Virus record (IMG/VR): IMGVR_UViG_3300023174_000038
Span: 248,001-312,000 of that record
Strand: one strand, 5' to 3'
Length of the DNA: 64,000 bases
The stretch's first letter is position 1; every line of letters begins with the position of its first letter. Below are positions 16,943-32,188 of this stretch, piece after piece. A program made the translations under genes and the position numbers. The notes beneath the pieces are model-generated. The model worked only from the letters and a program-made list of their open reading frames with translations. It was not told the origin of the DNA and did not search any database.

Positions 16943-17771
16943 TTTTTAACAATTGATCCATAGTATACAAATTACGCATATAGGGTGATACATTAGCTAG
17001 TACTGAACTAGGTAAATCACCCTTTCTTCTTGGACCATATTTTACTTCAAAACTACATTCATTTACTTTTTGAAATAAATCAACAATCTCTTGTACAGTA
17101 TAACCTACTCCGTGACCTAAACATTCAACACTATTGCTAGGCTTTTCAATAGCTTGTATTAATGCATCACATATTTCATTGACATGTACATAATCACGTA
17201 TACATGTACCATCAATAACTGATACATCATAGTCATTACCGTAGATAGTGAACTCACCCGTGTCACGTGCTTTCATTAGATTGTACATTAACCCATCGGG
17301 GTTAGTGGGAGCCACGACGGTACTTCCAATAACATTATAAAATCTAAAGATTGTATATGATGTTGGACGATGGGTAGTACAATATTCTCTAACAACATCT
17401 TCGGCAGCACGTTTACTAATTCCATAAGCACTGGAACAATCTTGTGCGGCACCGGTACTTGCAAAGATAAAGTTTTTAGTCTTTATCTTGTTAATGACAT
17501 TCATTGTACCATTCAAATTGGTAATATAATATTTGATCGGTATCTGTTCACTCTCACCTACACGAACTAATCCCGCTAAATGTATTACTGTATCATATTC
17601 AATATCGCCCGGGATAGCAAATTGTCTATTGATATCACAACGATAAAATTCATTTAAGGGTGCTTGTGGTTCCTCAATATCTAGTCCATGAACTTCATAA
17701 TCATTTTCAAGCATCTTACATAGATGACTACCTATGTATCCCGAGCAACCTGTAATTAAAATCTTTTTCAT
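16932..17771 (-). CDS. NAD-dependent NDP-sugar epimerase/dehydratase (GalE-like)
   Basis: GCSGYIG, HLAG, YGISK, RFYNV, RDYVHV, RRKGD. Confidence 0.9.
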   Translation of the reverse strand: MKKILITGCSGYIGSHLCKMLENDYEVHGLDIEEPQAPLNEFYRCDINRQFAIPGDIEYDTVIHLAGLVRVGESEQIPIKYYITNLNGTMNVINKIKTKNFIFASTGAAQDCSSAYGISKRAAEDVVREYCTTHRPTSYTIFRFYNVIGSTVVAPTNPDGLMYNLMKARDTGEFTIYGNDYDVSVIDGTCIRDYVHVNEICDALIQAIEKPSNSVECLGHGVGYTVQEIVDLFQKVNECSFEVKYGPRRKGDLPSSVLANVSPYMRNLYTMDQLLKINH

Positions 17772-19105
17772 TAAAAACTAAACAGGCTTAATCCTGTTTC
17801 CTCTTCTATTGGTTCAAAACTAGGGTCTTTTGTTAAATATGTATCCTCATCAGTATAGATAACACGGAACTTATGCTTGTTAGTTAATACACTACGTACA
17901 TCATCAATACAAATAATACTACGGTTTAAATCACTAATGAAGTCAACATGTTTAATTGTAGTTTCATTACATATCTTTGCAGTGTTTGTGTTAGATTGTT
18001 TAGGCTTAAAGTTTCTAAAACATTCCATCCATTTATGAAATACATTAGCTTCTTGTTCCTGTGCGTGTTGTAATGCTCCCAAGTTATACCATCTTTCTGC
18101 TTTTTCAAAAATATCATATAACTCTTTTGCTTTACTTGCCATGCCTTTTTTAGTACAAGTATAGAAAAAGCTTTTATTGAAGTTATTAGTCCATCGCTGA
18201 TTCTCTAATACTAATGTAGGCATTTGAATATGTTGTTCATAAAAAGCCATACCATAACTCTCTACTGTGCTAGGATTAAAAGCAATTCTAGCACTTGTAA
18301 TAAAGTCAACTTTCTCTTGACCAATAATACTTACTTTGATTTCGTATGGTACACCAATCTTCTTTAATCTATCTTCAAACTTTTTAGCACCATTAGCACT
18401 AGTCATTACTTTAGCAGGTAATTTTGTTTGTTCAATCAAGTCTAAGAATAGTTCAGGATTCTTACCTTCTTCCCAGCGACCAACAAACAATACACCTTCA
18501 CGTGGTTTATGATGTTCTTCTAATAAACCTTTTTCTGTAATAGGGATAGGTAAGTGATATGAAGATTCATTTAAATGTAGTTGATTGAATTTACTCTGTG
18601 TGCCCACATCAATATTTGTTAAGCTTAATTGGTGACGCATTGCTACATTAGTGTTGAACAAGAAGGGATTCTTAGTGTCTGTAAATATCTGGCTTTCTAA
18701 GTGAGTATATGCAATGATTTGAATCACATCTTCAAGTCCCATAGTACTAGCTACCTGTACAGTTTCATATGTGTTACATATTAATGCATCATATAAATTA
18801 TGTTCTAATGCTTCCACAATAGCTGTACGGAAGTTAGCCATACGTTCATAACAAAAGGTATCTCCATACATAAAGATATTGCTATGGTCAGTATACTTCA
18901 ATGATTCTAATGGAGCTATGATATTTGCAGGAATAGATTTAACAAACTCTGTATCCTGTGGTTCTTTATCTGTAATGATATCAACTTTGATATTATGTTG
19001 GTCCATTAGTTCACAGAAGCTTTTAGCAAATTGTCCTATTCCCCCATGTGGAATGAGAGTTTGATAGCTTACCAAAAAACCAATTCGTTTATCGTATGTT
19101 TTCAT
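17771..19105 (-). CDS. GT-B (GT4-like) glycosyltransferase
   Basis: PHGGIG, LFVGRWEEGKN, PSTVESYGMAFYE. Confidence 0.85.
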   Translation of the reverse strand: MKTYDKRIGFLVSYQTLIPHGGIGQFAKSFCELMDQHNIKVDIITDKEPQDTEFVKSIPANIIAPLESLKYTDHSNIFMYGDTFCYERMANFRTAIVEALEHNLYDALICNTYETVQVASTMGLEDVIQIIAYTHLESQIFTDTKNPFLFNTNVAMRHQLSLTNIDVGTQSKFNQLHLNESSYHLPIPITEKGLLEEHHKPREGVLFVGRWEEGKNPELFLDLIEQTKLPAKVMTSANGAKKFEDRLKKIGVPYEIKVSIIGQEKVDFITSARIAFNPSTVESYGMAFYEQHIQMPTLVLENQRWTNNFNKSFFYTCTKKGMASKAKELYDIFEKAERWYNLGALQHAQEQEANVFHKWMECFRNFKPKQSNTNTAKICNETTIKHVDFISDLNRSIICIDDVRSVLTNKHKFRVIYTDEDTYLTKDPSFEPIEEETGLSLFSF

Positions 19106-19275
19106 TTATCTTCTACAATAGGCACATCTTGCCATTCATTCCATTTTTTTACAGATACATATCTACCATCATCAGTCTTAGTACTGTAATCAGTTACTTC
19201 AAGTTGTGTTCTATATTGTAACACTTGTTCAGGTCCGTCCCAGCCGTTTCGGACAAGATATCTTAATTCAAACAT
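19102..19275 (-). CDS. Small hypothetical protein (57 aa)
   Basis: Manual ORF MFELRILVR...VLQYR...EWQDVPIV; ATGA overlap. Confidence 0.65.
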   Translation of the reverse strand: MFELRYLVRNGWDGPEQVLQYRTQLEVTDYSTKTDDGRYVSVKKWNEWQDVPIVEDK

Positions 19276-19279
19276 ATAT

Positions 19280-19510
19280 TTACCTCGTTAGTTTCCATAT
19301 AATATGGGTATTCTTATCGTGCCATCTATGTTCAAAGACAGGATCACCGGGACCAGTAATGATTCTAGTTAATCGGTATCCATACTTTAACCAAATACGA
19401 TTACCGGATATATCACATCTCTGCGGTAACCAAGCAAACTTGTATTCGGTGCCGATCATTCTTTCATAGAAATGATTGTATGGCTGTGTTTGTGGCATTA
19501 AGTTCCCCAT
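19280..19510 (-). CDS. Hypothetical protein
   Basis: FAWLPQRC..SG..IWL motif. Confidence 0.65.
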   Translation of the reverse strand: MGNLMPQTQPYNHFYERMIGTEYKFAWLPQRCDISGNRIWLKYGYRLTRIITGPGDPVFEHRWHDKNTHIIWKLTR

Positions 19511-20346
19511 TCGTTTTTGAAAAGATCACATTGAAGTCTGGCACTATATCTCCACCCTCTTTCCATAGCAAGGTTGGCAACTGTTTTAGTATTAAGTTGA
19601 TATTTGTCATTTGTTCCGCCCACAGGCATTAAATATACAGGACCTCTGAATCCAGCAATACGATATTCTTTAACTGCCTTTTCTGCCTCTAGTACATCAT
19701 CTTCTGTTGCTACTACAAACTTAAGATACACAAAGCCTATACTTTCATATTGACGAATGATACTAGGACAGATTGCTTCACTCCACTTCTCACCGCTGAT
19801 ACTTAATTTAGGACTGACACTAAATGTTAGAGCATTCTTTTCTCTGTTAATCTTCCATTGCTGTAGATAGATTGATAGGTCTTGACTAAGTTCTTGCGTA
19901 CCGTTAGTTTCAAATGTAATCTCTTTCAAACTTTTCATTTTTTCGTTTGAAAGTAATTCAGGATAAGACCTTTGCCAACCAAGTAGAGGCTCCCCACCAG
20001 TGATAACAAGGTGTTCGTCCATCCAGCGATTGTGAGGAAGCATAGCCATAATGTCGTCAACAATATCATCGGTGGGGCGAACAGGACTAAGATGCTTAAA
20101 CCTAGGATCCCATGAAGCATAGCTATCACACCCTGTACTGACCAGCGGTAATTTTTTATAATCATCATAATAGTGAACCCTTGACGCAATATCTTCTACT
20201 TCTTTACTAGTTTGACCTTTAGGCATGCCGAAGCCTGCACATGTAAAGTTACAACCAAATGTTCTTAGGAAAATACTTGGTACACCGATATATCGGCCCT
20301 CTCCTTGTATACTATAGAATAGTTCTGAAATTTTTATGTTACTCAT
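19498..20346 (-). CDS. queE: 7-carboxy-7-deazaguanine synthase (radical SAM)
   Basis: ELFYSIQGEG, RTFGCNFTC...GCDS, ITGGEP, FETNG, SVSPK. Confidence 0.93.
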   Translation of the reverse strand: MSNIKISELFYSIQGEGRYIGVPSIFLRTFGCNFTCAGFGMPKGQTSKEVEDIASRVHYYDDYKKLPLVSTGCDSYASWDPRFKHLSPVRPTDDIVDDIMAMLPHNRWMDEHLVITGGEPLLGWQRSYPELLSNEKMKSLKEITFETNGTQELSQDLSIYLQQWKINREKNALTFSVSPKLSISGEKWSEAICPSIIRQYESIGFVYLKFVVATEDDVLEAEKAVKEYRIAGFRGPVYLMPVGGTNDKYQLNTKTVANLAMERGWRYSARLQCDLFKNEWGT

Positions 20347-20350
20347 ATTT

Positions 20351-20542
20351 TTACCAATTATGTATTGTGTTTGCTATAATGAAAAAACATGTTATCACAT
20401 GTAGCACCACCCAGAAAGTTTTTAGGAACAATGCGATTCTTGCTTCACCCAATGTAAGAATAGGTACATCAGGACGATCATCATCAGTATTACCCATTAG
20501 ATGACCGGTTGCTCTTGCCCAGATTTTTTCTAAACTATTCAT
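20351..20542 (-). CDS. Small membrane protein
   Basis: C-terminal TM helix; WARATG motif. Confidence 0.65.
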   Translation of the reverse strand: MNSLEKIWARATGHLMGNTDDDRPDVPILTLGEARIALFLKTFWVVLHVITCFFIIANTIHNW

Positions 20543-20958
20543 TAAGCTACCTCGTCTTTATTGTTGCTAGGATATTTTGCACTAGTATATCTAATAACTA
20601 ATACGCTTATTGTTACAATAAATGTAGAAACAGCAACCGCTAACATTTCAACAATATTAATTGGCTGATGACTCATTATATCTACCATATGCCGTGTCAG
20701 TGCTGTTATTGCAATGTATAACAAGAACCTGACAGGCATATGATTGGTCTTGAAATAAATGCCTACCATTGCACCCATTTCTAAATAGATAAACATCAAC
20801 AACAAGTCACCAACAGTTGCGTGATGTTTCTGAAACAGTTCAACAAAAGTACATCCGGCTGCCCATACTGTTGCGGCACCGATACCAAACAATGCTAAAC
20901 GATGAAATATATCTACTAAGGTATGTCCTACCTTATCTACCATTTCTGTTTTTAACAT
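20542..20958 (-). CDS. psiE: Phosphate-starvation-inducible PsiE-family membrane protein
   Basis: 4 TM; DLLLMFIYLE...YFKTNHMPVRFLLYIAITALTR. Confidence 0.88.
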   Translation of the reverse strand: MLKTEMVDKVGHTLVDIFHRLALFGIGAATVWAAGCTFVELFQKHHATVGDLLLMFIYLEMGAMVGIYFKTNHMPVRFLLYIAITALTRHMVDIMSHQPINIVEMLAVAVSTFIVTISVLVIRYTSAKYPSNNKDEVA

Positions 20959-21440
20959 TATTCAAACTCCCTATCTTCTCTATGACCACCTCTACCTGCC
21001 ATATTACTATCAGTCTCACGTACCTCTACCCTACAACACCATACACGCTTTGCTTCTTCACTACCACAATTAGGTAAAAAGATTGTGTTAATGTATTCGT
21101 ATAAGAAGTCAGATATTCCCTCACAACCAGTACGCTCTACTTCTGTAATCTTAGCTAGTTTCAAACGACCTAGTTCTAATAGATGTTCACGCATAGGGTC
21201 ATCCTGTGCGACTAATAATGTATGGTCAAACCATTCTTCTAGTTTATCTTTAAGTGGTCGTAATCCCCCAAAGTCAGTTACCCAGTTACGTGCATCTAGT
21301 GTATCAGCTTCAAATTCAAAGTGAAAACTCATAGCATAGCCATGAATTAGATTACAATGACTGTCGGCACGCCATTGACGATATGCGACAGGACCTATTT
21401 GTCTGTATGTTTTTGTTGAAAAGAATTTTTTGTTTGCCAT
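20958..21440 (-). CDS. queD: 6-carboxytetrahydropterin synthase
   Basis: SHCNLIHGY, WVTDFG, FDHT, E..N C-terminal motif; next to queE/folE. Confidence 0.88.
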   Translation of the reverse strand: MANKKFFSTKTYRQIGPVAYRQWRADSHCNLIHGYAMSFHFEFEADTLDARNWVTDFGGLRPLKDKLEEWFDHTLLVAQDDPMREHLLELGRLKLAKITEVERTGCEGISDFLYEYINTIFLPNCGSEEAKRVWCCRVEVRETDSNMAGRGGHREDREFE

Positions 21441-21516
21441 TGTGTTCTCCTATGTTGTATTATAGCATAGGCAGCAGAATTTGTAAAGCGGGAATGATGC
21501 CAAAAGGCCGCTGTTC
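21441..21516 (-). promoter_or_regulatory. queD leader: sigma70 promoter embedded in structured RNA element
   Basis: TTTACA-17-TATAAT; AGCGG/CCGCT stem; GGCA/TGCC potential pseudoknot; CCTATG/CATAGG hairpin over RBS. Confidence 0.55.
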
Positions 21517-21990
21517 TTATTTATTAAGAGTGTTAATGATTTGGGCATCAGCTACCCGTTTACGTAAACTTGAACTACTAAAACTGTGGTCACGACCATT
21601 GAACACAATTTCAATACCTCGTTCCCCACCTTCATATCTTCCAGTAAACTCTTTATCAGCATATTCAACACCCAAAATGCGAACATCTAGGGGTAGAATC
21701 AGTAATAGGTCAATAAGGTCCTGTTCAGTTTGATATACAACAACTTCATCTACATAACGGCAAGCCGCAAGCTGAATCTGTCGCTCTACAATACTTTGAA
21801 TAGGTTTGTTCTTAGTATCAGGACGATCAATGGTTGGATCTGTTTGTAATCCACAAATCAAGTAATCACAGTGGTTCTTTGCCTCACTTAACATAGCAAC
21901 ATGTCCTGCATGTAGCAAATCAAATGTACTAAAGGTAATACCAATCTTTTTACCTTGTGCTTTTAATTCTTTGATATGATTGAAAATCAT
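21517..21990 (-). CDS. Cytidylyltransferase (glycerol-3-phosphate CTase/TagD-like)
   Basis: FDLLHAGH, ER, YVDEV, SSSSLR; start likely MIFNH at 21990. Confidence 0.88.
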   Translation of the reverse strand: MIFNHIKELKAQGKKIGITFSTFDLLHAGHVAMLSEAKNHCDYLICGLQTDPTIDRPDTKNKPIQSIVERQIQLAACRYVDEVVVYQTEQDLIDLLLILPLDVRILGVEYADKEFTGRYEGGERGIEIVFNGRDHSFSSSSLRKRVADAQIINTLNK

Positions 21991-22223
21991 TTTGAAAGAG
22001 TTCTCCACATTTTAACTTGGTCATGCTCTTTTAAGAATTCATCCTCACCCACAAATGTAGGACTATCTGCCATAATCTCATCTAACAACCACTTGATACG
22101 ATGTAAATCTTTTTTGATTTCAAACTGATTGAAACCATCATTGTAATTGCTATGTAATTCTACACCACTCATATAGATTTGATGATGTACACTGTTGTAA
22201 TCCATTTGTTTACGCAAGCCCAT
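21987..22223 (-). CDS. Hypothetical protein
   Basis: Operon-packed ORF. Confidence 0.7.
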   Translation of the reverse strand: MGLRKQMDYNSVHHQIYMSGVELHSNYNDGFNQFEIKKDLHRIKWLLDEIMADSPTFVGEDEFLKEHDQVKMWRTLSK

Positions 22224-22909
22224 TATTTACATCCCTTGTTAGCAATCTGTAAGAACTCTTGTCGTGCCGCTGGATCTGTTTTAAATCCACCACCTAAACG
22301 ACAAGTAACTGTACTAGAGCCTGTATCTTCTACACCACGTGACTTAACGCAATAGTGTTGTGCATCAATCATAACTGCAACATCTTCTGTATCAAGGATG
22401 AACTGTAAGGTGTGAAATATTTGTTCAGTTAATCTTTCCTGTATTTGCGGACGTTTACTGAAATATTCTACGATACGGTTGATCTTACTAAGACCTAAAA
22501 CTTTTTGTTTAGGGACATAAGCTACAGTAGCCAATCCATCAATCACTACACCGTGATGTTCGCAGTTAGATTGAACATTAACATTACGCTCTACAACCAT
22601 TTCGTTGTATTGCATCTTGTTGTCAACTGTTGTGCATTTCGGAAAGTTTTCATCTTTAAGACCGAAATATATTTCATTAATATACATCTTAGCCATTCTA
22701 TTTGGGGTCTCACGAAGGCTATCATCATTTAAATCTACACCCACTGTTTTCCAAATAGTAGTAAATGCATCCTCTAAAATGTCAATTTTCTTTTTATTTT
22801 CTACTGCAAGAGCAGATTCGTTGATGGGAGTTTCTACTCCTACTTTAGTAAGATACTCTCTTACTTTTTTACCCAATATTGGGTCACATTTGGTTTTGTC
22901 AAAACTCAT
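22223..22909 (-). CDS. folE: GTP cyclohydrolase I
   Basis: ETPNR, CEHH, GLSKINR, RPQIQERLT, HYCVKSRG. Confidence 0.95.
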   Translation of the reverse strand: MSFDKTKCDPILGKKVREYLTKVGVETPINESALAVENKKKIDILEDAFTTIWKTVGVDLNDDSLRETPNRMAKMYINEIYFGLKDENFPKCTTVDNKMQYNEMVVERNVNVQSNCEHHGVVIDGLATVAYVPKQKVLGLSKINRIVEYFSKRPQIQERLTEQIFHTLQFILDTEDVAVMIDAQHYCVKSRGVEDTGSSTVTCRLGGGFKTDPAARQEFLQIANKGCK

Positions 22910-22924
22910 ATTGATTCTCCTTAC

Positions 22925-23767
22925 TCAAATTTGTTTATGATTTAAAAATGTAGGTTTAGTTAAATTCCAAACTAAACCATACTGATACTTCTTATCAGGA
23001 TTAATGGAAATGTCATTATCATTTCTATACTTTCCTTTTAACTCTCCTTCAAAAATTATTCTCTTTCCTGAAGGTTTGTATAATCTTCCGTAGCTTATAG
23101 TGTACTCTAATTTTATTAGTTCTTCAATTTTATCGGGTGAAAGAAATTTCTCTTCACCGTTTACTATACACCATTTCTTACCCTTAACTGCGGACTTACC
23201 ATACATACCATTAACTTCTCCATGTCTGGCCATTTGAGTCTTTGATCCAACTCTAAATTTTATTTCGCTAGTATTGATAATATTAGCAATACTAAAAATT
23301 TGGTGGTACAATGGCAATTGATGATACTTTATAATAGAATGCTCACCTAATATGATATTATATATAGTTATAGTATCTTTTCTAGGATTATTGAATGTTT
23401 TCTTTTTGTGTGATGCCACTGCCCTAGACGATGACCAATTGCTAGTTCGTATATTAGTTAAGCCGTATTTTTGCTTCAACTCCAATATCAATTTTAACTC
23501 TATGCATAGAGCCTCATCTTCTGTAAGACCTTCACTGATTTTTACAATCTTAGGGTTCAATCCTAAACTTTGTATTAACCTAATAGTGTTTAACTTATGA
23601 CTATTTTTATGTTTTCTAGTCGGTCTAGCATCTTTTAAGTGGTCAAAAAGTCTACTACCAATGCCCTTACCTATATAAAAAGGCTTCGCTGAAAAAGAAA
23701 AAACACTTGAATTATAACTTCCCTCTTCCATGGGATTTAAATATGCGTATACATAATACTGTGACAT
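22925..23767 (-). CDS. Free-standing GIY-YIG homing endonuclease
   Basis: YYVYAY...PFYIGKG..R...H...E...LTN; NGMYGK NUMOD-like motif; AT-rich insert. Confidence 0.82.
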   Translation of the reverse strand: MSQYYVYAYLNPMEEGSYNSSVFSFSAKPFYIGKGIGSRLFDHLKDARPTRKHKNSHKLNTIRLIQSLGLNPKIVKISEGLTEDEALCIELKLILELKQKYGLTNIRTSNWSSSRAVASHKKKTFNNPRKDTITIYNIILGEHSIIKYHQLPLYHQIFSIANIINTSEIKFRVGSKTQMARHGEVNGMYGKSAVKGKKWCIVNGEEKFLSPDKIEELIKLEYTISYGRLYKPSGKRIIFEGELKGKYRNDNDISINPDKKYQYGLVWNLTKPTFLNHKQI

Positions 23768-23843
23768 ATAAGCTTCCTAACTCCTTATATTAAAATTTTA
23801 GAGACAGAATCTATCTTATTCTGTCACATGTATTTATGCCTGT

Positions 23844-24041: not shown

Positions 24042-24058
24042 TTTGTTTCCTTTAAATG

Positions 24059-25237
24059 TTATGAGTATTTTGTTTCTCTTGTGTATTTACGATAATCGGT
24101 AGTCATACGTAAATATTGTTCTCCGTTGCCTTCCATGATATCACAGATACGGTCAATTGTCCCATCATTGTACTTACTAATACGACCTTGATAGTTATGC
24201 GGTGCCATCAACAAATTTTGCAATTTAGACATAGCATCATCAATACTCCAAGGAATATATAGTCGGGTATTGTCATTTGCAAACGTTTCTGGAAAACTAC
24301 GATATGCTGGATATAATACATTACAACCCAACGTATCTGCTTCACTAACTGTATTACTTACCCAGTCTTGTAAAGCACAATTAAACAGTACTCTAGTATC
24401 ATTTAATAATTGATAGTAATCATTCTTTTCCAAATCTTCATAGATAACTAGTTTACCTTGACTTTGCAGTTTTCTAGTACGTTCCATATAACTTTCGTTA
24501 TTGCTTTTTAGTTTACTACCACTGAATACGCAGAACTCTACTTTAGTATTAGACCTAGAATGAAATGCTTCAATCAAATCCATATAGAAGTCAGGTTGTT
24601 TCTCTTGATCCCAACGTGCTGAAAATGCTACACGCATCTTACGTTGGTTGAAGGGTTTTAACGGTCCTGCAATACGTTCACGTACTTCATCTTTACCAAA
24701 TGCTAATCCTGAAATATTATAGATAGGAGCCTTCCAACCCGCAATCTTCATATGCATTACCATTTCTTCATTAGTAGCTAGTACACCGTCAACGAATGAA
24801 TCAACCATCTTTTCATAGTGACCCATAAATTCACTCATGCCCCATACATGTACGAAATCATCCGGATCAATTGACTGAGCAAGACAACGGACAAATATAC
24901 GAGGACGCAGATTAGCAGGAACTTGCTTAAGTATATAAGGAAGGCTTTCAATGCCCGGCTGAAACATATCTTCAAAATAGATAATATCTTCATCACTACA
25001 CTCACCTTGTTTCATCATCTTTACTAGATTCATTAATTGACTCATACCGTAGTATGTACGTCCATGTGCATCTAATACTTGTCCTGTTACAATAGCTTGG
25101 TCATTACTTAATGTATCACCGGGAACGATAACATAGTTAATGCCTCTACGTTTAAAGACACGTTCATTCCACTCTTGTAACTGTAGTGTATACCTGGCCT
25201 TGTACGGCTCAAGTCCCATGTAGTACAGCTTTCTCAT
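24059..25237 (-). CDS. GT-B glycosyltransferase (putative DNA glycosyltransferase)
   Basis: FSARWDQEKQP, ALQDWVSNTVSEA, YPAYRSFPE; start likely MRKLYY at 25237. Confidence 0.82.
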   Translation of the reverse strand: MRKLYYMGLEPYKARYTLQLQEWNERVFKRRGINYVIVPGDTLSNDQAIVTGQVLDAHGRTYYGMSQLMNLVKMMKQGECSDEDIIYFEDMFQPGIESLPYILKQVPANLRPRIFVRCLAQSIDPDDFVHVWGMSEFMGHYEKMVDSFVDGVLATNEEMVMHMKIAGWKAPIYNISGLAFGKDEVRERIAGPLKPFNQRKMRVAFSARWDQEKQPDFYMDLIEAFHSRSNTKVEFCVFSGSKLKSNNESYMERTRKLQSQGKLVIYEDLEKNDYYQLLNDTRVLFNCALQDWVSNTVSEADTLGCNVLYPAYRSFPETFANDNTRLYIPWSIDDAMSKLQNLLMAPHNYQGRISKYNDGTIDRICDIMEGNGEQYLRMTTDYRKYTRETKYS

Positions 25238-25434
25238 GGACGTGCGTCTTCCTGCCACTGATCCTTAGCCCACTTGCCAGTTACTGCTTTAGTAAATTGA
25301 CGATATGCAAAGCTACGCATATCATATAGGGTTGATTCATCAAACTTGTATCCATAATCTTGACAGAACATTAGATAGTTTTCTAGGTCCTCAAAGATTT
25401 GTTGAACACGTGGGTTAGATTGTTGTTTTGCCAT
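25234..25434 (-). CDS. Hypothetical protein
   Basis: IFEDLENYLMFC..YGY.FDE; AAGGA RBS. Confidence 0.72.
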   Translation of the reverse strand: MAKQQSNPRVQQIFEDLENYLMFCQDYGYKFDESTLYDMRSFAYRQFTKAVTGKWAKDQWQEDARP

Positions 25435-25445
25435 TATATATTCCT

Positions 25446-25901
25446 TTAAATAGCTAGTTGTTGATAAGGTTTGTTTGTGTTATAGACAATAGTAGCACCA
25501 TTCTCATTATCTTCTGATACTTGAATAGCGATATTACGATCTGGATACCGAGTTGCAATGACTTCATAGAGGTCATCACTAATCATTTCACAACTTTTGT
25601 AATCCAATTGAAGAATGCCTTGAGAATATTGATTCTCTAACCATCTTTTAAATTGGATAAACTCAATATCACGGTCGTTGTGAAATACTTCAATAGACAC
25701 TTCAAAATGAAAGATGTGTCTATGTGGAGTAGCTAAAAAGCTAACATCATACTCATCACCTGTAGCAAGTGCTGGGTCTGTTGCAGCCGCTGGGTATTTA
25801 TGAATACCTTCTTTTTGAAAACGTACAAAGATTGTACGTAATGCATTATCTTTAATGCGAGAACGTTTCTCTGCCATTGCTTGTTCATGTTGTTCTATCA
25901 T
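25446..25901 (-). CDS. QueD-paralogous T-fold protein, DpdL-like (putative CDG decarboxylase)
   Basis: LATPHRHIF matches the LxxxHRHxF signature recalled for DpdL; EGIH, SCEM, VSEDNENG. Confidence 0.72.
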   Translation of the reverse strand: MIEQHEQAMAEKRSRIKDNALRTIFVRFQKEGIHKYPAAATDPALATGDEYDVSFLATPHRHIFHFEVSIEVFHNDRDIEFIQFKRWLENQYSQGILQLDYKSCEMISDDLYEVIATRYPDRNIAIQVSEDNENGATIVYNTNKPYQQLAI

Positions 25902-26125
25902 TTAAAATCCCTGTTTAATGTTGCCCATGTTAACCACTTATGAAATGTATTATACACTAATTCTGCTTCTTTGTCATCTTGAGGTACCCGTTTACCACGT
26001 ATATAAAACCCATCTTTTGAAATACGTAACATTTCATCTGAACCACCAGTAAAGGTGATAGTAGAGTCCTGATTATCGGCAGTCATCGTTGACTTAACTG
26101 TAAGTGATGGAGTAATGTTAATCAT
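25898..26125 (-). CDS. Hypothetical protein
   Basis: EMLRISKDGFYIRG; operon-packed. Confidence 0.65.
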   Translation of the reverse strand: MINITPSLTVKSTMTADNQDSTITFTGGSDEMLRISKDGFYIRGKRVPQDDKEAELVYNTFHKWLTWATLNRDFK

Positions 26126-26129
26126 TATA

Positions 26130-26687
26130 TTATTTCCAATAAGGGCCCCAAGCCCAATTAATTAATGACCATCTGGTCCCTGATGTTAACAAACTAACTG
26201 CATGTGTATAAAAACTAGGAAATGATATTAGCGTACCTTTTTTATTAGGCATAGTTTTACCTAAAATACTAAATATCCCGCCCTTGTAATCAGTATCATT
26301 ACTAAGTTGTACTATTGTAGTAAATTTTCTATCCATAGTTTGTCCACGAGATGCTCCAAAATTGTCAGGATGTTCATTAAAAAAGTCAGATGTTTTGTAA
26401 CGTTTTAAAACGTAAGGCTCAATAAAAGTAATATCAAATCCATGAAATTTTACAATTTCTTCCCAATCTTTTTCAAAAACGTCTTTAACTTTATGTTGTT
26501 TATCTAATACACAATCTTCATATTTTAAACGGTTAACATTTGGACTATACTTAGGCACACCGGGTTTAACATGACTGGTGCCATACTCAATTAACTCATC
26601 ACACATATTATTAGATAAAAAATCTTCTTTAATAAGTATTTTATCTAACAAATTCCAAGATATTTCAGGTTTAACTATAATATCCAT
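26130..26687 (-). CDS. 2OG-Fe(II) oxygenase (prolyl-hydroxylase-like)
   Basis: HxD (HPD), YKGG, FPSFYTHAV, GTRWS. Confidence 0.88.
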   Translation of the reverse strand: MDIIVKPEISWNLLDKILIKEDFLSNNMCDELIEYGTSHVKPGVPKYSPNVNRLKYEDCVLDKQHKVKDVFEKDWEEIVKFHGFDITFIEPYVLKRYKTSDFFNEHPDNFGASRGQTMDRKFTTIVQLSNDTDYKGGIFSILGKTMPNKKGTLISFPSFYTHAVSLLTSGTRWSLINWAWGPYWK

Positions 26688-28297
26688 TACCTATTATCCC
26701 CTAGGGCTTCATTCATAGCATCATCGCTATCCTCTATTACTTCTTCAAACTCTTCCTCAACTTTTGGTTGATCTATTACGTCAAAAAATTTGTCAAAGTT
26801 AGTCATTGCATTAGCAGTTTTCTTACCACTAATGCCCTGACTACCCGATTGAAACTGCATCCAGTATCTACTATGATAATCAATCAAATTGATAGCTTCC
26901 TGTTTAGTTTTTTTACTAAAGATTTCATCAATTAACTCACTAAAAAACTTACTACCTTCAAACTTGTGAATTAACATTTTAGGTACAGTGCCATTTTCAT
27001 ATTGACGATTAGCTTCTTGTACTGCATTCATATGCATCCAAACATTATGACTTTGAAGCAAGGTATAACTTAATGTATCCCAACTAGTTTTAGTTTCTTT
27101 ACCATGCTGTCCCAAAAAACCTTGACCACGATAACAAAGATCCTTAAGCACTAGTTTATCAGTTACTGGACTATCTGTAAAGACTTTATGGATGCCTTCA
27201 GCTAATACAGCATCACGAAATTTACGGGTATCATTAGCATAACTTTTCTTTTCAGCAGTCTTTTCCATACTGTATGACCATTTCTTATTATGCTCAATGT
27301 TAGTATTGAAATAAGCTAGACCTTTAGCCGCACTATAGAATGGGCTTGCACAGTCAAAGGTAATCATTAGTTTAGGGTTGTGATATTTGCGTATAGCTTT
27401 CTGAATATCAGTAAACAATACAGCATATTCTAAAATACTTGTACCCAAACAATGAATTAAATCATGTTTACCTTCTACTAATAAACCATCATGGATAATA
27501 TCAATCATACGTGTCAACATCAAATGAGGATCAATCTTATTTTGACCACCAAACGCCCAACCATTAAAGTGATTGTCTGGATATATATTTGGGTCACAAT
27601 ATTTCTTCATCTCATTATACCAATCTTCTGATTGTGTATGATTACGACCCTGCAATACATTTAAGAACTTACATTCGCCTGTGCGATTATTAATAAAGTA
27701 TTCGTTATTAATATGGGTAGCTTTAACTGCATCTGCAATGTATTGAATTCCATGAACACTTACTCCTGATCCAGGAATAACATTACCCTTTTCGTCTTTC
27801 TCAAGAGTTTTTGGATCTTTAAGATGATAGGTTGTTAGTGATTGTGAAGGAATATCTAAACACATACCATAATTCATATATGTATCCATCCAGTTTAATA
27901 CTGCTTTACGCTTAACCATAGCTTTAGGGCAATTAGGATCTTTCCAATCAGCAGGCCATTGACCTTTTAAAATCTGAAATCCACCAGAGTCACCCAACAT
28001 AAACGTATCAGCTTCACGTTCTCTAATAATACTTTCACTAGGATCGTCTTTAGTAGTATCTAAGTTAGCATGACCAGCACTATACAAACCCCACTTATAA
28101 TAATAGAGTCCCTCTTTACTGTTTAAGAAGTTTAGTTTCTCTACATCACCATTGAATTGAGCAGGGATTCGTGCTTGGTCAAAGTACTCTTCACCTTTAC
28201 GTTGCTTACCTAAACCAGAGATATAAAAACTACTGACTGCGGGTAAGAACAATGCCCAATCGGGATTTTGTTTTACTGATAGATTATCTTGTTCCAT
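26687..28297 (-). CDS. dpdA: TGT-superfamily DNA 7-deazaguanine transglycosylase (DpdA-like)
   Basis: GDSGGFQ, LDIP, NVLQG, GWAFGG, HCLG, TFDCASP, terminal HN; sits with folE/queD/queE. Confidence 0.82.
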   Translation of the reverse strand: MEQDNLSVKQNPDWALFLPAVSSFYISGLGKQRKGEEYFDQARIPAQFNGDVEKLNFLNSKEGLYYYKWGLYSAGHANLDTTKDDPSESIIREREADTFMLGDSGGFQILKGQWPADWKDPNCPKAMVKRKAVLNWMDTYMNYGMCLDIPSQSLTTYHLKDPKTLEKDEKGNVIPGSGVSVHGIQYIADAVKATHINNEYFINNRTGECKFLNVLQGRNHTQSEDWYNEMKKYCDPNIYPDNHFNGWAFGGQNKIDPHLMLTRMIDIIHDGLLVEGKHDLIHCLGTSILEYAVLFTDIQKAIRKYHNPKLMITFDCASPFYSAAKGLAYFNTNIEHNKKWSYSMEKTAEKKSYANDTRKFRDAVLAEGIHKVFTDSPVTDKLVLKDLCYRGQGFLGQHGKETKTSWDTLSYTLLQSHNVWMHMNAVQEANRQYENGTVPKMLIHKFEGSKFFSELIDEIFSKKTKQEAINLIDYHSRYWMQFQSGSQGISGKKTANAMTNFDKFFDVIDQPKVEEEFEEVIEDSDDAMNEALGDNR

Positions 28298-28665
28298 TAA
28301 GCTACTTCTGATTTAATTAATGTTTGAACAACCTTGATTTGTTCTTCTTTGTCTTTGATTTGATTAATAAGGTCTTTGATAACTGGATTAGTTTGTGCTA
28401 ATCGTTCTATATAAAGTTCCTCGTCACGTTTCCTACGTGCCCATTCTAACAAACTAACTGCCTCATCACTTAAGTTTAGAGTAGCGTGATGTGCTGAAAG
28501 AATAATCCAAGTACTACCATCATATACTTCTATATTCTGACTATTAGGGTTATATCTCATATTACCCACACCAGGACTATTGCTATAGTTAGCTATATAA
28601 GTGGATCCAGGATTACCACCAGATACAGTTAAGAATGGACTATTAGAGTGTATGCTCTTAATCAT
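28297..28665 (-). CDS. Hypothetical protein
   Basis: GNMRYN...EVYDGSTW plus C-terminal coiled coil. Confidence 0.72.
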   Translation of the reverse strand: MIKSIHSNSPFLTVSGGNPGSTYIANYSNSPGVGNMRYNPNSQNIEVYDGSTWIILSAHHATLNLSDEAVSLLEWARRKRDEELYIERLAQTNPVIKDLINQIKDKEEQIKVVQTLIKSEVA

Positions 28666-29393
28666 TTTGCTTGTGCTGGGAGTAAGTAACGATATACTGC
28701 TAAACCACTGTCAACAACAATCTCTGTTGCACCAGCATCACTAATACGAATAATCTTATCGCCGGGTAGATCCATAATGCTTAAGAATTCTTTAACAGGC
28801 CACATCCATGCTTTATTCAATGAACCAGTAACACCTGGATAGAACACAAAATTACCACTGTGTGTTGAAGGGTCACCAAAGTAAACCATTAAGTTACCAT
28901 TTTCTGTTTTAGTAGTAAAGTTCTTTTCTTCACTATTAGCACTTGCTTGACGCTTCAATCGTTGAATGCCTGCGATAGAGGGTTCAAACTCTACATTCCA
29001 TGTAGTACCTTTGAACATTACATTCTTAACTTTCTCATCAGCAATAGCTTTACTCATTAAACGATAGTCGTTAACGAAATCACCTGCTTTTGTTTCAAAG
29101 TGAATGTATTCTGGTACATCAACACCATCTTTGTTAACACGTGTAACATTGATTTTAGCATGTTCATCATAGTCATCAAAGCCTAGAATTGTTTTTAGTT
29201 TACCTAAATTAGGCATACCGAACACACCGATGAATTCTACGTTAGGATGCTTAAGCACACCACTAACAATAACACTCTTATCTTCTGCCACTGCGTTAAC
29301 AGTAGTTTCTTTGTCAGTTCCACTGACTTTAATCAAATCAATACAGCCTAAGCCATGTGTGTGTTGAATTAAATCTTGTAAATTATCTTTCAT
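28662..29393 (-). CDS. Sliding clamp (gp45-like)
   Basis: 243 aa alpha/beta protein directly downstream of PolB; ends YRYLLPAQ like clamp C-termini. Confidence 0.7.
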   Translation of the reverse strand: MKDNLQDLIQHTHGLGCIDLIKVSGTDKETTVNAVAEDKSVIVSGVLKHPNVEFIGVFGMPNLGKLKTILGFDDYDEHAKINVTRVNKDGVDVPEYIHFETKAGDFVNDYRLMSKAIADEKVKNVMFKGTTWNVEFEPSIAGIQRLKRQASANSEEKNFTTKTENGNLMVYFGDPSTHSGNFVFYPGVTGSLNKAWMWPVKEFLSIMDLPGDKIIRISDAGATEIVVDSGLAVYRYLLPAQAK

Positions 29394-29470
29394 GTTTTTC
29401 CTTTGTTTTAACTATTTAGGTAGTTGTGATACGTATTATAACGGAATATATTACGAAATGCAACACCAAT

Positions 29471-32188
29471 TTAACCGAAACTGAATAAATCATCAAACGT
29501 ACTGTTGGTATCTGTATTGCTACGAATATCCCAACCAAGTACACCCAATAAGTTATCAATCTTCTCATCTACTAACGTCTGTTCCATAGCTGAATCATCA
29601 AATGGTAACTCAGTAAACCATTTGGGTAAACGTAATTCATCTACGGGATATGCCACACTTGTAAACCCTAATGGATTGGGTTTGAGTTTACATACAACAA
29701 CCTTCATACCATCAATAATCTTTTGACTATAATTATCGCTGTTTACTCTACGCAAGTAATTGTAATTAAGTGCCGCTCTTACGTGACCGGGCATATTAGC
29801 TCTGCCTGTACTACTCTTTGCTTCTAAGTCACCATACATTGTAAGTTTGTTGACACCTTTAGGCGATCCTTTAGTCCAACTATCCTGTGCAGATAAGATA
29901 CGTTTGAAATCTTTTACTGCTTCAATAACTTCCTCACGACCTTTACCCTGTTGAAGAACCATCTGTAATACATTCATTAAGAATTCTTGTACATACTTAG
30001 GTGTATCAGCACGTTTTAAATCAAGACCCATAGCTTTGATATCACCCAATTGTCCGTCTTTATCTTTGCGTTTACCTTCTTTGTCAAAGATGTTAATAGC
30101 ATAACGCTTCTTAACAATAAAGATAGCACGGTCACCAATCAGTTCACGACCAGCTTTAATGATTTCACCATTCTTACGTGGTGCATGAAATGCTTTCTCC
30201 ATGAACGCGGGGAAACTATCATTTGCTTGGTCAGCAATACCGTCATATAAACCAATACAAGTTTCTTTATTCCACTCTAATGCACCAGATTCAATCTGTG
30301 GCTTTAGTGTTGGATATGCCGTAAAGTAACAACTATCTGTATCACCATACACAATAGCATTGCCTTCATGTGAATAAATACCTTCAACTGTTTCATTGAT
30401 AGTACTCATCATATGTTTAACAATCTGTCTACCGGATAGTGTTACTGATTGACCGATACGTTTATCATAGAAACGACAATGTTCATTCAACAAGGCACCA
30501 TAAGCACTATTCAATAAAATCTTACGAACAAGTTGTCGCTTATCGTAATAATCAAACATATCAGTACCATATGCTTCTTTAGCTTGTTTTTGAATTGCTT
30601 TACGTTCTGTATACCAGCGTGTGAGTAGACCAGGTACGACACCTTCTTTTTCATAGGTAAAGATTGTACCGTTAGCACTTAACATCCAAGGCTTATGACT
30701 ATCAAATATCATCTTCCAGATTTCAGCCGCTGACATCTCTACACTACGACCATCTTCAAAATCAACTGTAAGAATTGTACCACGTTCTTGGTTCATGATT
30801 GCAGTATATTCTAATGCACCAAATAGATTCTCCCAGAGAATAGATCCTGTTACAGCATCATCACCTTCTTTGTGACGTTTCTTTTCACTAGCTAATCGTA
30901 ATCCCTTATCGTGCATATATTGGTCTGTGATTGTTTGTCTGACCTGAGCAACGATGGTTTCTCCTGCCATGTTGAGGGCACGAATAACCGAGGGATAGAG
31001 TGAGTTAATGTCAACTGCTCCGACATATTCATGCATACCTCTTTTCGGCGTAGCAACAAAGGCACCTGCTGCCTGCTGGACATCTTCTTCATTTTCAACC
31101 TTTCGTTTTTTATCTGGTACTACTAAGCCACGTTCATGTGCTTCATTAAAAATTGCCATCTCAATCATTGCTACAGAACCCATTACTGTTGGAAGCAATA
31201 CTGTGTTCTCATGTGCAAGTTGATTAGCTAATTCTAAAAACTTAAGTTTGTTGTGAATCTTCACCAACAACATCGTATCTTGTCTGTTATATTCAATAAA
31301 CTTTTTAAAGTCTTTGTTATACAGTTGGTCAAGAGTACCTTCATATTGTGTTTTGTTTTCACCTACTTCCATCTCACCGATACTGTCAAGCTTATAACTA
31401 TGGCGTGATTCATAGTTATACTTTTTGTACAACTGTAGATAGTCTAAGTGAATACGACCTACTAAGTCATAAGTTGTTTCGCTTTTACCAAAGCGTTCAT
31501 ATTCTCTAGCTTTAGGCAGTTGACCCATCAAGCAAAACTTGCGTGTGTCATCCTTACTCATTACTCTAGTAACACGATTGACCATGTAGGGAATATCATA
31601 TCCCTCTGAGTTCCATCCAGTTAATACATCAGCATCTTCAATGAGTTGAAAGAAAACATCAAACATTTCCTTCTCTGATTTGAATAGCATTGTATTATCA
31701 AATTCATTAGTGATTTCTTGGGCTGTTTCACTGCTCATATGTTTCGGAGCAATCACTAATGTAATACATTGGTCTAGCCAATCTAAGTAACAACTGATAG
31801 CTGTAACTGGATTGAATGGATCACTAGTAGGACTGAAACCCTTTTCAGGATCAAAGTCTACTTCAATGTCAAAGAAGCAAGTATGAAGTTTGGGCGCATC
31901 AATGCCAAGATAGTTTTCACTTAGGCAACGAAAGACTACTGGTACATCACTTTCAAACAATTTCTTATTTGAGTGGATGCGTTTTTCTTTTTCAAACTCT
32001 TGTCGTTTGCGAGTACTGAAACGACTGACTGGATCGCCATAGATACTACGATGTTTACCCTTACTATCAGGATAATACAATACGTAGTTAGTAGGGTATT
32101 CTTTGTATTGACGCTTGCCGTCTTTGTTTCTCTCTACAACGTAGATACGATCCTCATCCCTGCTATGAATAGCGTCAATATAACTCAA
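29471..32188 (-). CDS. Family B DNA polymerase (T4 gp43-like)
   Basis: DIE and GWNSEGYDIPY exonuclease motifs; DINSLYPS, KILLNSAYG, YGDTDS, KKRY. Confidence 0.97.
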   Translation of the reverse strand: MSYIDAIHSRDEDRIYVVERNKDGKRQYKEYPTNYVLYYPDSKGKHRSIYGDPVSRFSTRKRQEFEKEKRIHSNKKLFESDVPVVFRCLSENYLGIDAPKLHTCFFDIEVDFDPEKGFSPTSDPFNPVTAISCYLDWLDQCITLVIAPKHMSSETAQEITNEFDNTMLFKSEKEMFDVFFQLIEDADVLTGWNSEGYDIPYMVNRVTRVMSKDDTRKFCLMGQLPKAREYERFGKSETTYDLVGRIHLDYLQLYKKYNYESRHSYKLDSIGEMEVGENKTQYEGTLDQLYNKDFKKFIEYNRQDTMLLVKIHNKLKFLELANQLAHENTVLLPTVMGSVAMIEMAIFNEAHERGLVVPDKKRKVENEEDVQQAAGAFVATPKRGMHEYVGAVDINSLYPSVIRALNMAGETIVAQVRQTITDQYMHDKGLRLASEKKRHKEGDDAVTGSILWENLFGALEYTAIMNQERGTILTVDFEDGRSVEMSAAEIWKMIFDSHKPWMLSANGTIFTYEKEGVVPGLLTRWYTERKAIQKQAKEAYGTDMFDYYDKRQLVRKILLNSAYGALLNEHCRFYDKRIGQSVTLSGRQIVKHMMSTINETVEGIYSHEGNAIVYGDTDSCYFTAYPTLKPQIESGALEWNKETCIGLYDGIADQANDSFPAFMEKAFHAPRKNGEIIKAGRELIGDRAIFIVKKRYAINIFDKEGKRKDKDGQLGDIKAMGLDLKRADTPKYVQEFLMNVLQMVLQQGKGREEVIEAVKDFKRILSAQDSWTKGSPKGVNKLTMYGDLEAKSSTGRANMPGHVRAALNYNYLRRVNSDNYSQKIIDGMKVVVCKLKPNPLGFTSVAYPVDELRLPKWFTELPFDDSAMEQTLVDEKIDNLLGVLGWDIRSNTDTNSTFDDLFSFG

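Follow-up and report, generated by a model that had tools for sequence, protein, structure and literature searches.

The window analysed here is a stretch of 64,000 nucleotides from the IMG/VR virus record IMGVR_UViG_3300023174_000038 (positions 248,001 to 312,000 of that record). The DNA belongs to a giant phage and encodes a DNA polymerase, a sliding clamp and a clamp-loader subunit, together with a DpdA-like transglycosylase, a glycosyltransferase (GT), several 7-deazaguanine precursor genes and a protein with no assigned function (ORF 11377). The features are as follows, with coordinates numbered from the first nucleotide of the window.

11377..11979, minus strand: ORF 11377, a 200-aa protein with no assigned function, with HFSTLFSY at 11398-11421
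17771..19105, minus strand: GT-B-like glycosyltransferase, 444 aa (Glycos_transf_1, below the Pfam cutoff)
19498..22909, minus strand: genes for 7-deazaguanine precursors, flanked by those of the GT and the DpdA-like protein
19498-20346, minus strand: QueE-like gene
20958-21440, minus strand: QueD/PTPS gene
21517-22008, minus strand: cytidylyltransferase-like gene
22223-22909, minus strand: FolE gene
26687..28297, minus strand: DpdA-like DNA transglycosylase of the TGT superfamily, 536 aa, assigned by motif, fold and context
26696..26737, minus strand: second conserved motif of the DpdA-like tail, IEDSDDAMNEALGD (residues 521-534), recognised by its conservation
26783..26800, minus strand: DpdA-like tail motif NFDKFF (residues 500-505), a putative PolB-like epitope read as NFDKFFDV
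28662..29393, minus strand: sliding clamp of the PCNA/gp45 type, 243 aa, assigned by fold, with no sequence-level family match
29471..32188, minus strand: PolB, a gp43-like family B DNA polymerase (Pfam DNA_pol_B, 1.6e-40; phrog_262, 2.5e-197)
56071..56997, minus strand: gp44-like clamp-loader subunit (BLASTP to T4 gp44, 32% identity over 272 aa, E 5.9e-26)

PolB matches T4 gp43 by BLAST (E 2e-59) and ends in NSTFDDLFSFG, the tail motif being encoded at 29474-29500 on the minus strand; TFD[DE]LFxF is invariant across 80 related viral loci. The clamp gene adjoins PolB, and this synteny is kept in PA5oct, Vibrio 2.275.O, Phosso and CBB. The AF2 model of the clamp (pLDDT 96.9, pTM 0.91) has exclusively PCNA proteins as its top Foldseek matches (prob 1.00, TM 0.61-0.73), and VIA aligns it with PCNA (Z 18.5, rmsd 3.8, 222 aligned) and with T4 gp45 in 6drt (Z 16.7, rmsd 3.2, 213 aligned). 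Searches of Pfam and NCBIfam gave no match, PHROG returned only phrog_12062 ('unknown function'), phmmer and profile searches of PDB sequences were blank, and hhalign against T4 gp45 gave a probability of 14% or less; the identity of the clamp is settled only by fold. The two-domain protomer fold expected of a PCNA/gp45-type clamp is present in the predicted model and is secure, and the gene is encoded with both a polymerase (PolB, adjacent) and a clamp loader (the gp44-like protein in the window). The related-locus search used for the clamp and the GT gave no relatives below 75% identity.

The DpdA-like protein contains the catalytic-type motif LGDSGGFQ at residues 101-108, in which D103-Q108 are invariant in the distant homologs of PA5oct, Vibrio and Phosso; this contains DSGG[FL]Q, which we take to be the TGT catalytic-aspartate motif. 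All of the top 50 Foldseek matches are tRNA-guanine transglycosylases (TGT/ArcTGT; prob 1.00, E 3e-6), with the qualification that the model searched has a pLDDT of 66.6 and the TM values are only 0.33/0.45, and an ESM feature match links the protein to a PF01702 cluster (0.93). Neither Pfam (PF01702) nor the NCBIfam TGT model gives a match up to E 0.01, PHROGs likewise give none, profile searching of PDB sequences returned nothing, and tblastn found only PA5oct-like, Phosso and Vibrio 2.275.O homologs. Of three marks of a TGT-family enzyme, the fold and the catalytic motif are present and the match to a sequence-family model is not. That the enzyme inserts a 7-deazaguanine into DNA is an inference, supported only by the genomic context (FolE, QueD and QueE); nothing above cutoff was found for QueC in the genome. 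The GT scores 22 bits against Pfam Glycos_transf_1 (PF00534), under the 26.4 cutoff, and a precomputed PF00534 match exists for many of its orthologs (86-93% identity). A second GT of the cluster (24059-25258) lacks a polymerase-like tail.

The sequence-only reading had proposed that PolB, the GT, the DpdA-like protein and ORF 11377 share a C-terminal peptide like that with which T4 proteins bind their clamp, and all four peptides were confirmed at their positions. In the GT the protein ends EEETGLSLFSF, with GLSLFSF encoded at 17774-17794 on the minus strand. The T4 precedent is also correct: the T4 tails were read from NC_000866, and the review PMC2988020 describes the tails of gp43, gp55 and gp33 as binding gp45, interchangeably, on divergent linkers. 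Two features expected of such an epitope are found here. The GT, the DpdA-like protein and the ORF 11377 orthologs carry a short peptide, hydrophobic and acidic, at the C-terminal end or not far from it, and a conserved epitope is joined to the protein by a flexible linker that diverges in sequence and varies in length. No tail among the four matches the canonical PIP-box pattern Qxx[ILM]xx[FY][FY].

Judged on this genome by itself, the peptide match does not stand out clearly from chance: a loose motif regex applied to the last 9-12 residues finds 4-5 ORFs, against 2-3 expected from shuffles. When the C-termini of all 392 ORFs are scored for similarity to TFDDLFSF, the conserved core of the PolB tail, the GT comes first, in a post hoc test; when the whole tail was used naively, variable last residue and all, both the GT and the DpdA-like protein ranked poorly. 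Similar C-terminal peptides, taken as background, occur in a baseplate protein, a pirin and a sulfotransferase. As the single-genome match is near chance, the weight of the argument rests on the conservation of the tails in orthologs and on their co-variation with polymerase tails in other phages.

The conservation is narrowly focused on the peptides. Beyond the folded domain, 51 GT orthologs have just two conserved positions, L441 (at least 90%) and F442 (invariant), and among about 58 distinct tail variants the LF always lies within the last 2-4 residues while linker length and sequence vary; an ortholog with only 43% identity ends ALFDW. In the DpdA-like protein the motif stops 31 residues short of the C-terminus and is followed by an acidic stretch. 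Residues 484-536 are modelled with pLDDT below 50 except near short helices, one of which (501-504) coincides with the motif. Across 22 orthologs at 70-90% identity F505 is invariant and F501 is kept in at least 90%, with variants including TMFDQLFEV and SKFEELFEV, and in the L058/L060-62 variants the motif is shifted to the C-terminus (MFNELFQLGT). The only other conserved part of this tail is the DSD motif, in which D523, S524 and D525 are nearly invariant, a helix is predicted at 524-531, and G533 is invariant across the PA5oct, Vibrio and Phosso homologs. The more diverged orthologs of ORF 11377 (81-91% identity) end exactly in HFSTLFSY or HFSKLFSF; the protein has no match in Pfam, PHROG or NCBIfam, with only a weak GIY-YIG lead, and is inferred, without binding data, to be a fourth candidate clamp client. 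Overall, the LF core is kept in hundreds of metagenomic orthologs and the linkers and tails around it vary, and the GT, DpdA-like and ORF 11377 tails behave like a short linear interaction motif with a fixed core on a variable, disordered, acidic linker. The first of the two refuting outcomes named in the sequence-only reading, tails that are not conserved, is thereby excluded, the core being invariant or nearly so in all three proteins.

A conserved peptide of this kind might instead be a degradation or localisation tag, such as a protease degron limiting the lifetime of replication-phase enzymes. Hydrophobic C-terminal tags on disordered linkers are typical of degrons, and the carriers are all early- or middle-phase DNA enzymes. 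Against this, the same class of peptide on gp43 and gp55 is an experimentally established clamp epitope (PMC2988020), and the internal position of the DpdA-like motif is a poor fit to a strictly C-terminal degron. We consider this explanation very improbable, and the reading as a clamp epitope is preferred.

Co-variation with the polymerase was examined in homologs from other phages, which were selected by catalytic domain with the tail ignored. In Vibrio 2.275.O, PolB ends NNTDLFDW and the DpdA-like protein NNNDLFGW, ranking 1 of 501 ORFs. The corresponding tails are SSLESLFG and QSLEELFG in BUDD, PSLDDLFE and TTLDELFE in ACP17, and SSLEDLFGW and NSLDDLFG in Moby (PolB and DpdA-like, respectively). 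BUCT-ZZ01, a cyanophage, serves as a positive control in that true gp45, gp44, gp62 and gp55 homologs are present; its gp43 ends STLDDFFS, its GT homolog (39.5% identical) ends GSLEDFFND and ranks 1 of 239 for likeness to the gp43 tail, and its DpdA-like protein ends ASLDSFFD and ranks second. The motif [ST]L[DE]xFF occurs within the last 45 residues only in gp43, gp55, the DpdA-like protein and the GT (4 of 240 ORFs, where shuffled sequences would give 0.04); this regex is among those drafted after the tails were known. In these five phages the DpdA-like motif is C-terminal. PA5oct is a less close match (PolB HFDSLFGW, DpdA-like SFNSLFDV), and a good rank is obtained only with a trimmed peptide.

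The echo is not universal. The DpdA homolog KVP40.0122 does not match its own polymerase tail, that of pf16 does so only partially (TLDLMCA), and the DpdA-like protein of Phosso is weak, keeping only EGLF at its end. A distant GT homolog in BUDD is without the motif, and GT homologs were not found in PA5oct, Vibrio 2.275.O or Phosso. The echo of a phage's own polymerase tail recurs in most other lineages checked, and the high similarity to the cognate polymerase tail expected of a shared epitope is present with KVP40, pf16 (partial) and Phosso (weak) as the exceptions. Over ten lineages the summed PolB/DpdA tail similarity is 227 for matched pairs versus 169 +/- 14.5 for permuted pairs (p about 4e-5), a value that overstates independence because several of the ten lineages may be related.

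These comparisons bear on the objection that the resemblance is a chance or compositional effect of short hydrophobic C-termini with no common function. In its favour, the loose motif is about as frequent in shuffled proteins as in this genome, and the unrelated baseplate, pirin and sulfotransferase proteins have similar endings. Against it are the conservation of the LF core in the many orthologs with variable linkers, the ranks in Vibrio 2.275.O and BUCT-ZZ01, and the permutation result. Chance is therefore disfavoured and appears very unlikely to account for the pattern, and we retain the interpretation as a shared functional epitope.

Whether the peptides bind this clamp is a matter of prediction. 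The clamp trimer was modelled together with a GT fragment (residues 410-444) in three runs, giving ipSAE values of 0.44, 0.10 and 0.47 (median 0.44; best control 0.01), with partner pLDDT of 39-47, contact agreement of at least 49% and no interface reported; this is rated as weak support. The mark used for such predictions is reached by 58 of 80 solved complexes and by 2 of 110 mismatches, and scores of 0.60 or below come from only seven of the 80 solved complexes and from both mismatches. The weak prediction is not counted alone as evidence of binding.

The shared peptide could alternatively bind another replisome hub, such as the host beta clamp, the phage SSB, the clamp loader or the polymerase itself. 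The bacterial beta-clamp pentapeptide is QL[SD]LF, which the GT tail GLSLF resembles; T4 gp43 tails reportedly use more than one site on gp45 (PMC2988020); and the clamp-GT prediction is only weak. On the other side, the phage clamp gene lies directly beside PolB and the DpdA-like gene in conserved synteny, this class of tail binds gp45 in T4 and RB69 (PMC2988020), and the tails follow the phage's own polymerase tail across hosts that include a cyanobacterium, Vibrio, Xanthomonas and Acidovorax. Tracking across such different hosts is easier to reconcile with a partner encoded by the phage than with one supplied by the host, and we regard a different hub as unlikely.

We conclude that the DpdA-like enzyme, the GT and ORF 11377 are likely clients of the phage clamp, with binding inferred and no binding data available. 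The analysis shows the peptides and how well they are conserved, how they co-vary with the tail of the cognate polymerase from lineage to lineage, and the folds of the clamp and the TGT-like enzyme. Binding of the peptides to this clamp, binding of the PolB tail as in T4 and RB69, and action of the GT on DNA are inferred. The sequence-only reading, that modifying enzymes ride the sliding clamp, is thus supported overall. Its placing of the clamp at 28662..29393 is upheld by the PCNA/gp45 fold and the gp44-like loader in the window, and its claim of clamp binding remains a prediction, with weak support for the GT tail. Its further suggestion, that the tail independently supports GT action on newly replicated DNA, held only in part: the tail argues for DNA near replication, and the substrate of the GT is not shown.

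[quoted passage not shown] Clamps remaining on new duplex DNA would recruit the transglycosylase and the GT, and the transglycosylase would exchange G for a 7-deazaguanine base. Modification would thereby be coupled to replication in space and time, and may gain from one-dimensional sliding along DNA. A bolder reading, offered tentatively and with less confidence than its contrary, is that tethering to the clamp is a general and as yet unrecognised principle by which phages organise the 7-deazaguanine modification of their DNA, in which the DpdA-type enzymes and following GTs of clamp-encoding phages ride their own clamp by means of a copy of the polymerase tail; in that case the second acidic motif of the DpdA-like protein may be a hand-off site to another replisome component.

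The recurrence of the tail echo in most lineages checked points to a physical link between DNA modification and the replication clamp. There is no explanation as yet of how DpdA locates and covers a genome that is being replicated rapidly, and a clamp epitope offers a concrete mechanism; if the bolder reading is true, tethering would explain quick whole-genome modification by a post-replicative base-exchange enzyme. The list of phage clamp clients would be widened, and cultivable carriers are available in Moby, ACP17, BUDD, PA5oct and BUCT-ZZ01. For the GT at 17771-19105, the polymerase-like tail is independent but indirect evidence that it works on DNA. Scanning a polymerase tail against its proteome may also be a cheap finder of DNA-acting enzymes among unannotated genes, e.g. 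ORF 11377.

The arrangement resembles the gp43, gp55 and gp33 epitopes of T4 and RB69 (SLDFLFG, SLDFLYEAND), in which a short peptide on a variable linker is common to the polymerase and other clients. It differs in that the clients here are a TGT-fold transglycosylase, a GT-B glycosyltransferase and a 200-aa protein of unknown function rather than transcription factors, and in that the DpdA-like motif is internal and followed by a second conserved acidic motif. Also unlike T4, the gp55-like sigma (late sigma factor) of this phage has no recognisable epitope, and the clamp lacks detectable sequence similarity to gp45. Eukaryotic PIP-box clients are a parallel in concept: DNMT1 is recruited by PCNA, and a PIP-box peptide with a small helix brings a DNA-modifying enzyme to newly replicated DNA, although the motifs here have no Q and a different spacing.

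Among modifying enzymes, a close precedent is the T4 alpha-GT, which co-purifies with gp45 (PMC13216743, which cites Sommer 2004 and re-tests the interaction) and is likewise a phage DNA GT that binds the clamp and is proposed to modify DNA alongside replication. The T4 enzyme is from another GT family and has 5-hmC as its substrate, whereas the context here is 7-deazaguanine; its tail (FKEQFDIITK, NC_000866) has no gp43-like epitope, and no binding motif is defined in the bearing sections of PMC13216743, a 2026 study which concluded that the alpha/beta glucosylation ratio is set mainly by something other than clamp binding. The T4 DNA ligase peptide solved on gp45 (PDB 6drt, from the entry title) is another case of a DNA-processing enzyme tethered to the clamp, differing in enzyme class from the clients here. 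The DpdA-like protein itself resembles phage DpdA1-4 (PMC6884629, PMC10516641) as a TGT-superfamily enzyme encoded with FolE, QueD and QueE. DpdA is regarded as a post-replicative inserter of 7-deazaguanine, with efficiencies in phages from under 0.1% to 100% of guanines (PMC10516641), and no clamp link for DpdA was found in the literature searched or in the bearing sections of PMC6884629 and PMC10516641. The likely clamp clients described here would extend the T4 toolbelt, the alpha-GT-gp45 association included, to DNA transglycosylases.

The virus record, of 348.7 kb with the window as its bases 248001–312000, is rated complete, and the window's family B polymerase is nearest to those of jumbo myophages, among them Phosso, Atu_ph07, RaK2 and CBB (42–48% identity). 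No near-identical phage record was found among those searched, and metagenome relatives are plentiful by word search (1562 for the glycosyltransferase, at least 6938 for the DpdA-like protein and 2860 for the clamp). The sequence-only reading had claimed that four proteins share a C-terminal peptide resembling the clamp-binding tail of T4 gp43, and all of the peptides it quoted are confirmed by translation.

Features and tail peptides in this genome
29471–32188, minus strand: family B polymerase (PolB), NSTFDDLFSFG at the C-terminus
17771–19105, minus strand: first GT-B-like glycosyltransferase (GT), EEETGLSLFSF at the C-terminus
26687–28297, minus strand: DpdA-like enzyme, NFDKFFDV at residues 500–507 (26777–26800; NFDKFF is 26783–26800), then an acidic stretch
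11377–11979, minus strand: ORF 11377, HFSTLFSY six residues before the protein end
28662–29393, minus strand: predicted sliding clamp
56071–56997: gp44-like clamp loader

Without other genomes for comparison, the resemblance does not clearly exceed chance: a search of the final 9–12 residues with a loose motif picks out 4–5 ORFs versus 2–3 in shuffles, and a baseplate protein, a pirin and a sulfotransferase have similar endings, so the evidence on which the shared tail was first proposed is merely suggestive. Tails without conservation would have counted against that proposal, and here they proved conserved, with the LF or F positions retained in orthologs. The GT tails compared came from 120 close orthologs, 80 GT loci and a more distant ortholog (43% identity). 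Beyond TYLTKDP, where the folded domain ends, they vary in length and sequence apart from an LF pair 2–4 residues before the C-terminus (LSLFSF, LSLFEGL, ELFQW, SLFSW, ALFDW); within the pair, F442 never changes and L441 is conserved at 90% or more. In the DpdA-like enzymes F505 never varies and F501 hardly does (variants include TMFDQLFEV and SKFEELFEV). The linker after the motif is variable, and one sublineage has a different sequence in place of the acidic part, with MFNELFQLGT at the C-terminus. The PolB tail, TFD[DE]LFxF, is invariant (80/80 loci), and ORF 11377 orthologs (81–91% identity) end exactly in HFSTLFSY or HFSKLFSF. In the AlphaFold model the DpdA-like tail has low confidence, and its motif forms a helix of four residues. 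Such a pattern is typical of short linear interaction motifs, with binding itself inferred.

Beyond its variable acidic linker the DpdA-like tail carries a second conserved motif, IEDSDDAMxExLGE (residues 521–534, 26696–26737). PA5oct still shows this motif faintly (INDEKLTELEQGLDN); the sublineage of loci L058 and L060–62 has lost it. The gp55 of BUCT-ZZ01, a T4-like cyanophage, has a similar two-motif layout (SLEKFFDDSDEAN...), and a 63-aa ORF outside the window (9007–9198 of contig C1 of the whole genome, G000) ends ...DEELFEVIKEALALELDN, resembling the two-part tail (xFDQLFEV ... AMNEALGE), possibly by chance.

The evidence that appears decisive for reading these tails as those of clamp clients, short of binding data, is their co-variation with the polymerase tail in other phages. 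Homologs were picked by catalytic domain, and the tail was then read beside the polymerase tail of the same phage.

Tails of polymerases and modifying enzymes in other phages (sequences end at the C-terminus unless stated)
Vibrio phage 2.275.O: PolB NNTDLFDW; DpdA-like NNNDLFGW
PA5oct: PolB HFDSLFGW; DpdA-like SFNSLFDV, with an acidic tail after
BUCT-ZZ01: gp43 STLDDFFS; GT homolog (39.5% identity) GSLEDFFND; DpdA-like (adjacent gene, 416 aa, HADSGGLQ) ASLDSFFD
BUDD: PolB SSLESLFG; DpdA-like QSLEELFG
ACP17: PolB PSLDDLFE; DpdA-like TTLDELFE
Moby: PolB SSLEDLFGW; TGT NSLDDLFG
Phosso: PolB TTFNDLFTF; DpdA-like ...VEGLF (weak)
pf16: PolB SLEDFFS; DpdA-like TLDLMCA (partial)
KVP40: PolB TLESFFG; KVP40.0122 ...EFPAFKEQE (no match)

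A polymerase-like tail on modifying enzymes recurs in at least seven lineages; the motif is absent from the tail of a distant BUDD GT homolog. When the last 6–8 residues of the polymerase were scored against the C-termini of every ORF in the same genome, the DpdA-like protein of Vibrio phage 2.275.O ranked first of 501, and the GT and DpdA-like proteins of BUCT-ZZ01 ranked first and second of 239. BUCT-ZZ01 encodes genuine gp45, gp44, gp62 and gp55 homologs, and [ST]L[DE]xFF is found in the last 45 residues of only 4/240 of its ORFs (gp43, gp55, DpdA-like and GT; 0.04 in shuffles). This expression was composed once the tails were known; its recovery of gp55 serves as a positive control, since the gp55 C-terminal epitope is conserved in T4-related phages (PMC2988020). 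Permutation over ten lineages, including the negatives, gave a matched-pair similarity of 227 versus 169 ± 14.5 (p about 4e-5), which is optimistic because some lineages are related.

The proposed partner (243 aa) has no match in Pfam or NCBIfam, its sole family match is phrog_12062, of unknown function, and sequence comparison connects it neither to solved structures nor to T4 gp45. An AlphaFold2 model built from an alignment of 120 diverse representatives (pLDDT 96.9, pTM 0.91) matches PCNA in every top Foldseek match (probability 1.00), and an exhaustive structure aligner gives Z 18.5 against PCNA and Z 16.7 against T4 gp45 (6drt; rmsd 3.2, 213 residues aligned). The gene directly follows PolB, an order shared by PA5oct, Vibrio phage 2.275.O, Phosso and CBB. 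With this predicted fold, the PolB adjacency and the gp44-like loader, the product is almost certainly the phage's sliding clamp, and the earlier clamp call stands. The clamp gene is separated from the DpdA-like gene by a 122-aa ORF (28297–28665) that many relatives lack (e.g. L006, L020 and L028); in these the DpdA-like gene begins 3 bases past the clamp gene. In PA5oct (L001, MK797984.1 216595–221821) the clamp homolog is annotated as a 'structural protein' with mass-spectrometry evidence, and the polymerase is two ORFs split by a Hef-like homing endonuclease gene.

The DpdA-like protein (536 aa) has no family match in Pfam, NCBIfam or PHROGs, and a profile search of PDB sequences was blank. 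It contains LGDSGGFQ, which is invariant among distant homologs; the Foldseek top 50 for its moderate model (pLDDT 66.6) are tRNA-guanine transglycosylases only (probability 1.00, E 3e-6, TM 0.33/0.45), and a language-model search points to a PF01702 cluster. By tblastn it is linked to PA5oct-like phages, Phosso and Vibrio phage 2.275.O only. The gene clusters with those for FolE, QueD and QueE (within 19498–22909), a 2OG oxygenase, two GT-B-like proteins, a nucleotidyltransferase-like protein and an epimerase. We accept the product as probably a DpdA-like member of the TGT superfamily, of undetermined subfamily, with DNA base exchange inferred. For QueC, the whole genome yields only hits below the Pfam cutoff (best 16.5 bits, G000:C1:206841–207029), so the pathway may end at 7-carboxy-7-deazaguanine or borrow a host enzyme. 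The second GT-B-like gene (24059–25258), whose product lacks a clamp-like tail, is 64% identical to a BUCT-ZZ01 gene (L003:6989–8155), compared with only 39.5% for the first GT, suggesting that a deazaguanine/GT module may have been exchanged recently between very different phages. The 2OG-Fe(II) oxygenase gene (26130–26687) abuts the DpdA-like gene, and genes for a PsiE-family membrane protein (20542–20958) and a LEM-3-like GIY-YIG nuclease (22925–23767) are interspersed with the deazaguanine genes.

The multimer check that had been suggested was run with the clamp trimer and GT residues 410–444, with alignments, and returned ipSAE values of 0.44, 0.10 and 0.47 (median 0.44; best control 0.01), a tool verdict of 'weak support' only. 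The tool's mark is reached by 58/80 solved complexes and 2/110 mismatches, with scores of 0.60 or less belonging to 7 of those 80 and to both mismatches. Partner pLDDT does not fall below 39, nor contact agreement below 49%, and the output names no interface; the prediction is compatible with binding and is no proof of it.

The T4 and RB69 gp43, gp55 and gp33 clamp-binding tails, those of T4 re-read here from its genome, are interchangeable and sit on divergent linkers (PMC2988020). By analogy, the PolB tail would bind the phage clamp as its T4 counterpart does, and the DpdA-like enzyme, GT and ORF 11377 would be further clients, recruited onto clamps sitting on freshly replicated DNA, such that base exchange and later decoration would trail the replication fork. 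The motifs, their conservation and co-variation, and the folds are shown; that these three proteins are clamp clients is the most economical reading and a probable one, with binding, the clamp site, timing and the GT's DNA substrate inferred. The main rival is that the tails engage another hub, for instance the beta clamp of the host, SSB or the clamp loader. The bacterial beta-clamp motif is QL[SD]LF, which GLSLF of the GT resembles. However, in phages of hosts as different as cyanobacteria and Xanthomonas, the tails track that of the polymerase encoded by the same phage, which favors a phage-encoded partner and makes the rival unlikely.

Clamp recruitment may also extend to repair: ORF 11377 is unannotated (200 aa, with its polymerase-like tail) and yields only a weak GIY-YIG lead by language-model search, and it may be a clamp-recruited repair nuclease, both binding and activity being inferred. 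Its neighbors are a UvdE UV-endonuclease gene (12380–13447) and a 333-aa ORF (9479–10480). The gp55-like late sigma factor, outside the window (G000:C1:86506–87417), ends ...SSSTVYEE without a clamp-like epitope, its PA5oct and Vibrio phage 2.275.O homologs are similar, and BUCT-ZZ01 gp55 retains the epitope; late transcription in these jumbo phages is therefore perhaps not clamp-activated, unlike that of T4.

Modification with 7-deazaguanines is post-replicative and affects from <0.1% to 100% of guanines (PMC10516641), and clamp tails offer a testable mechanism for a process of such widely varying efficiency. There is firm precedent both for clamp toolbelts and for DNA-modifying enzymes that bind clamps. 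Co-purification with gp45 is known for T4 alpha-GT (Sommer 2004; PMC13216743 confirms it), whose own tail has no gp43-like epitope; a peptide of T4 DNA ligase has been solved on gp45 (6drt), and DNMT1–PCNA is a eukaryotic parallel. No clamp epitope on DpdA-type transglycosylases or 7-deazaguanine-cluster glycosyltransferases was reported in the literature searched, and what is new here is thus probably a known recruitment device on these two new classes of client.
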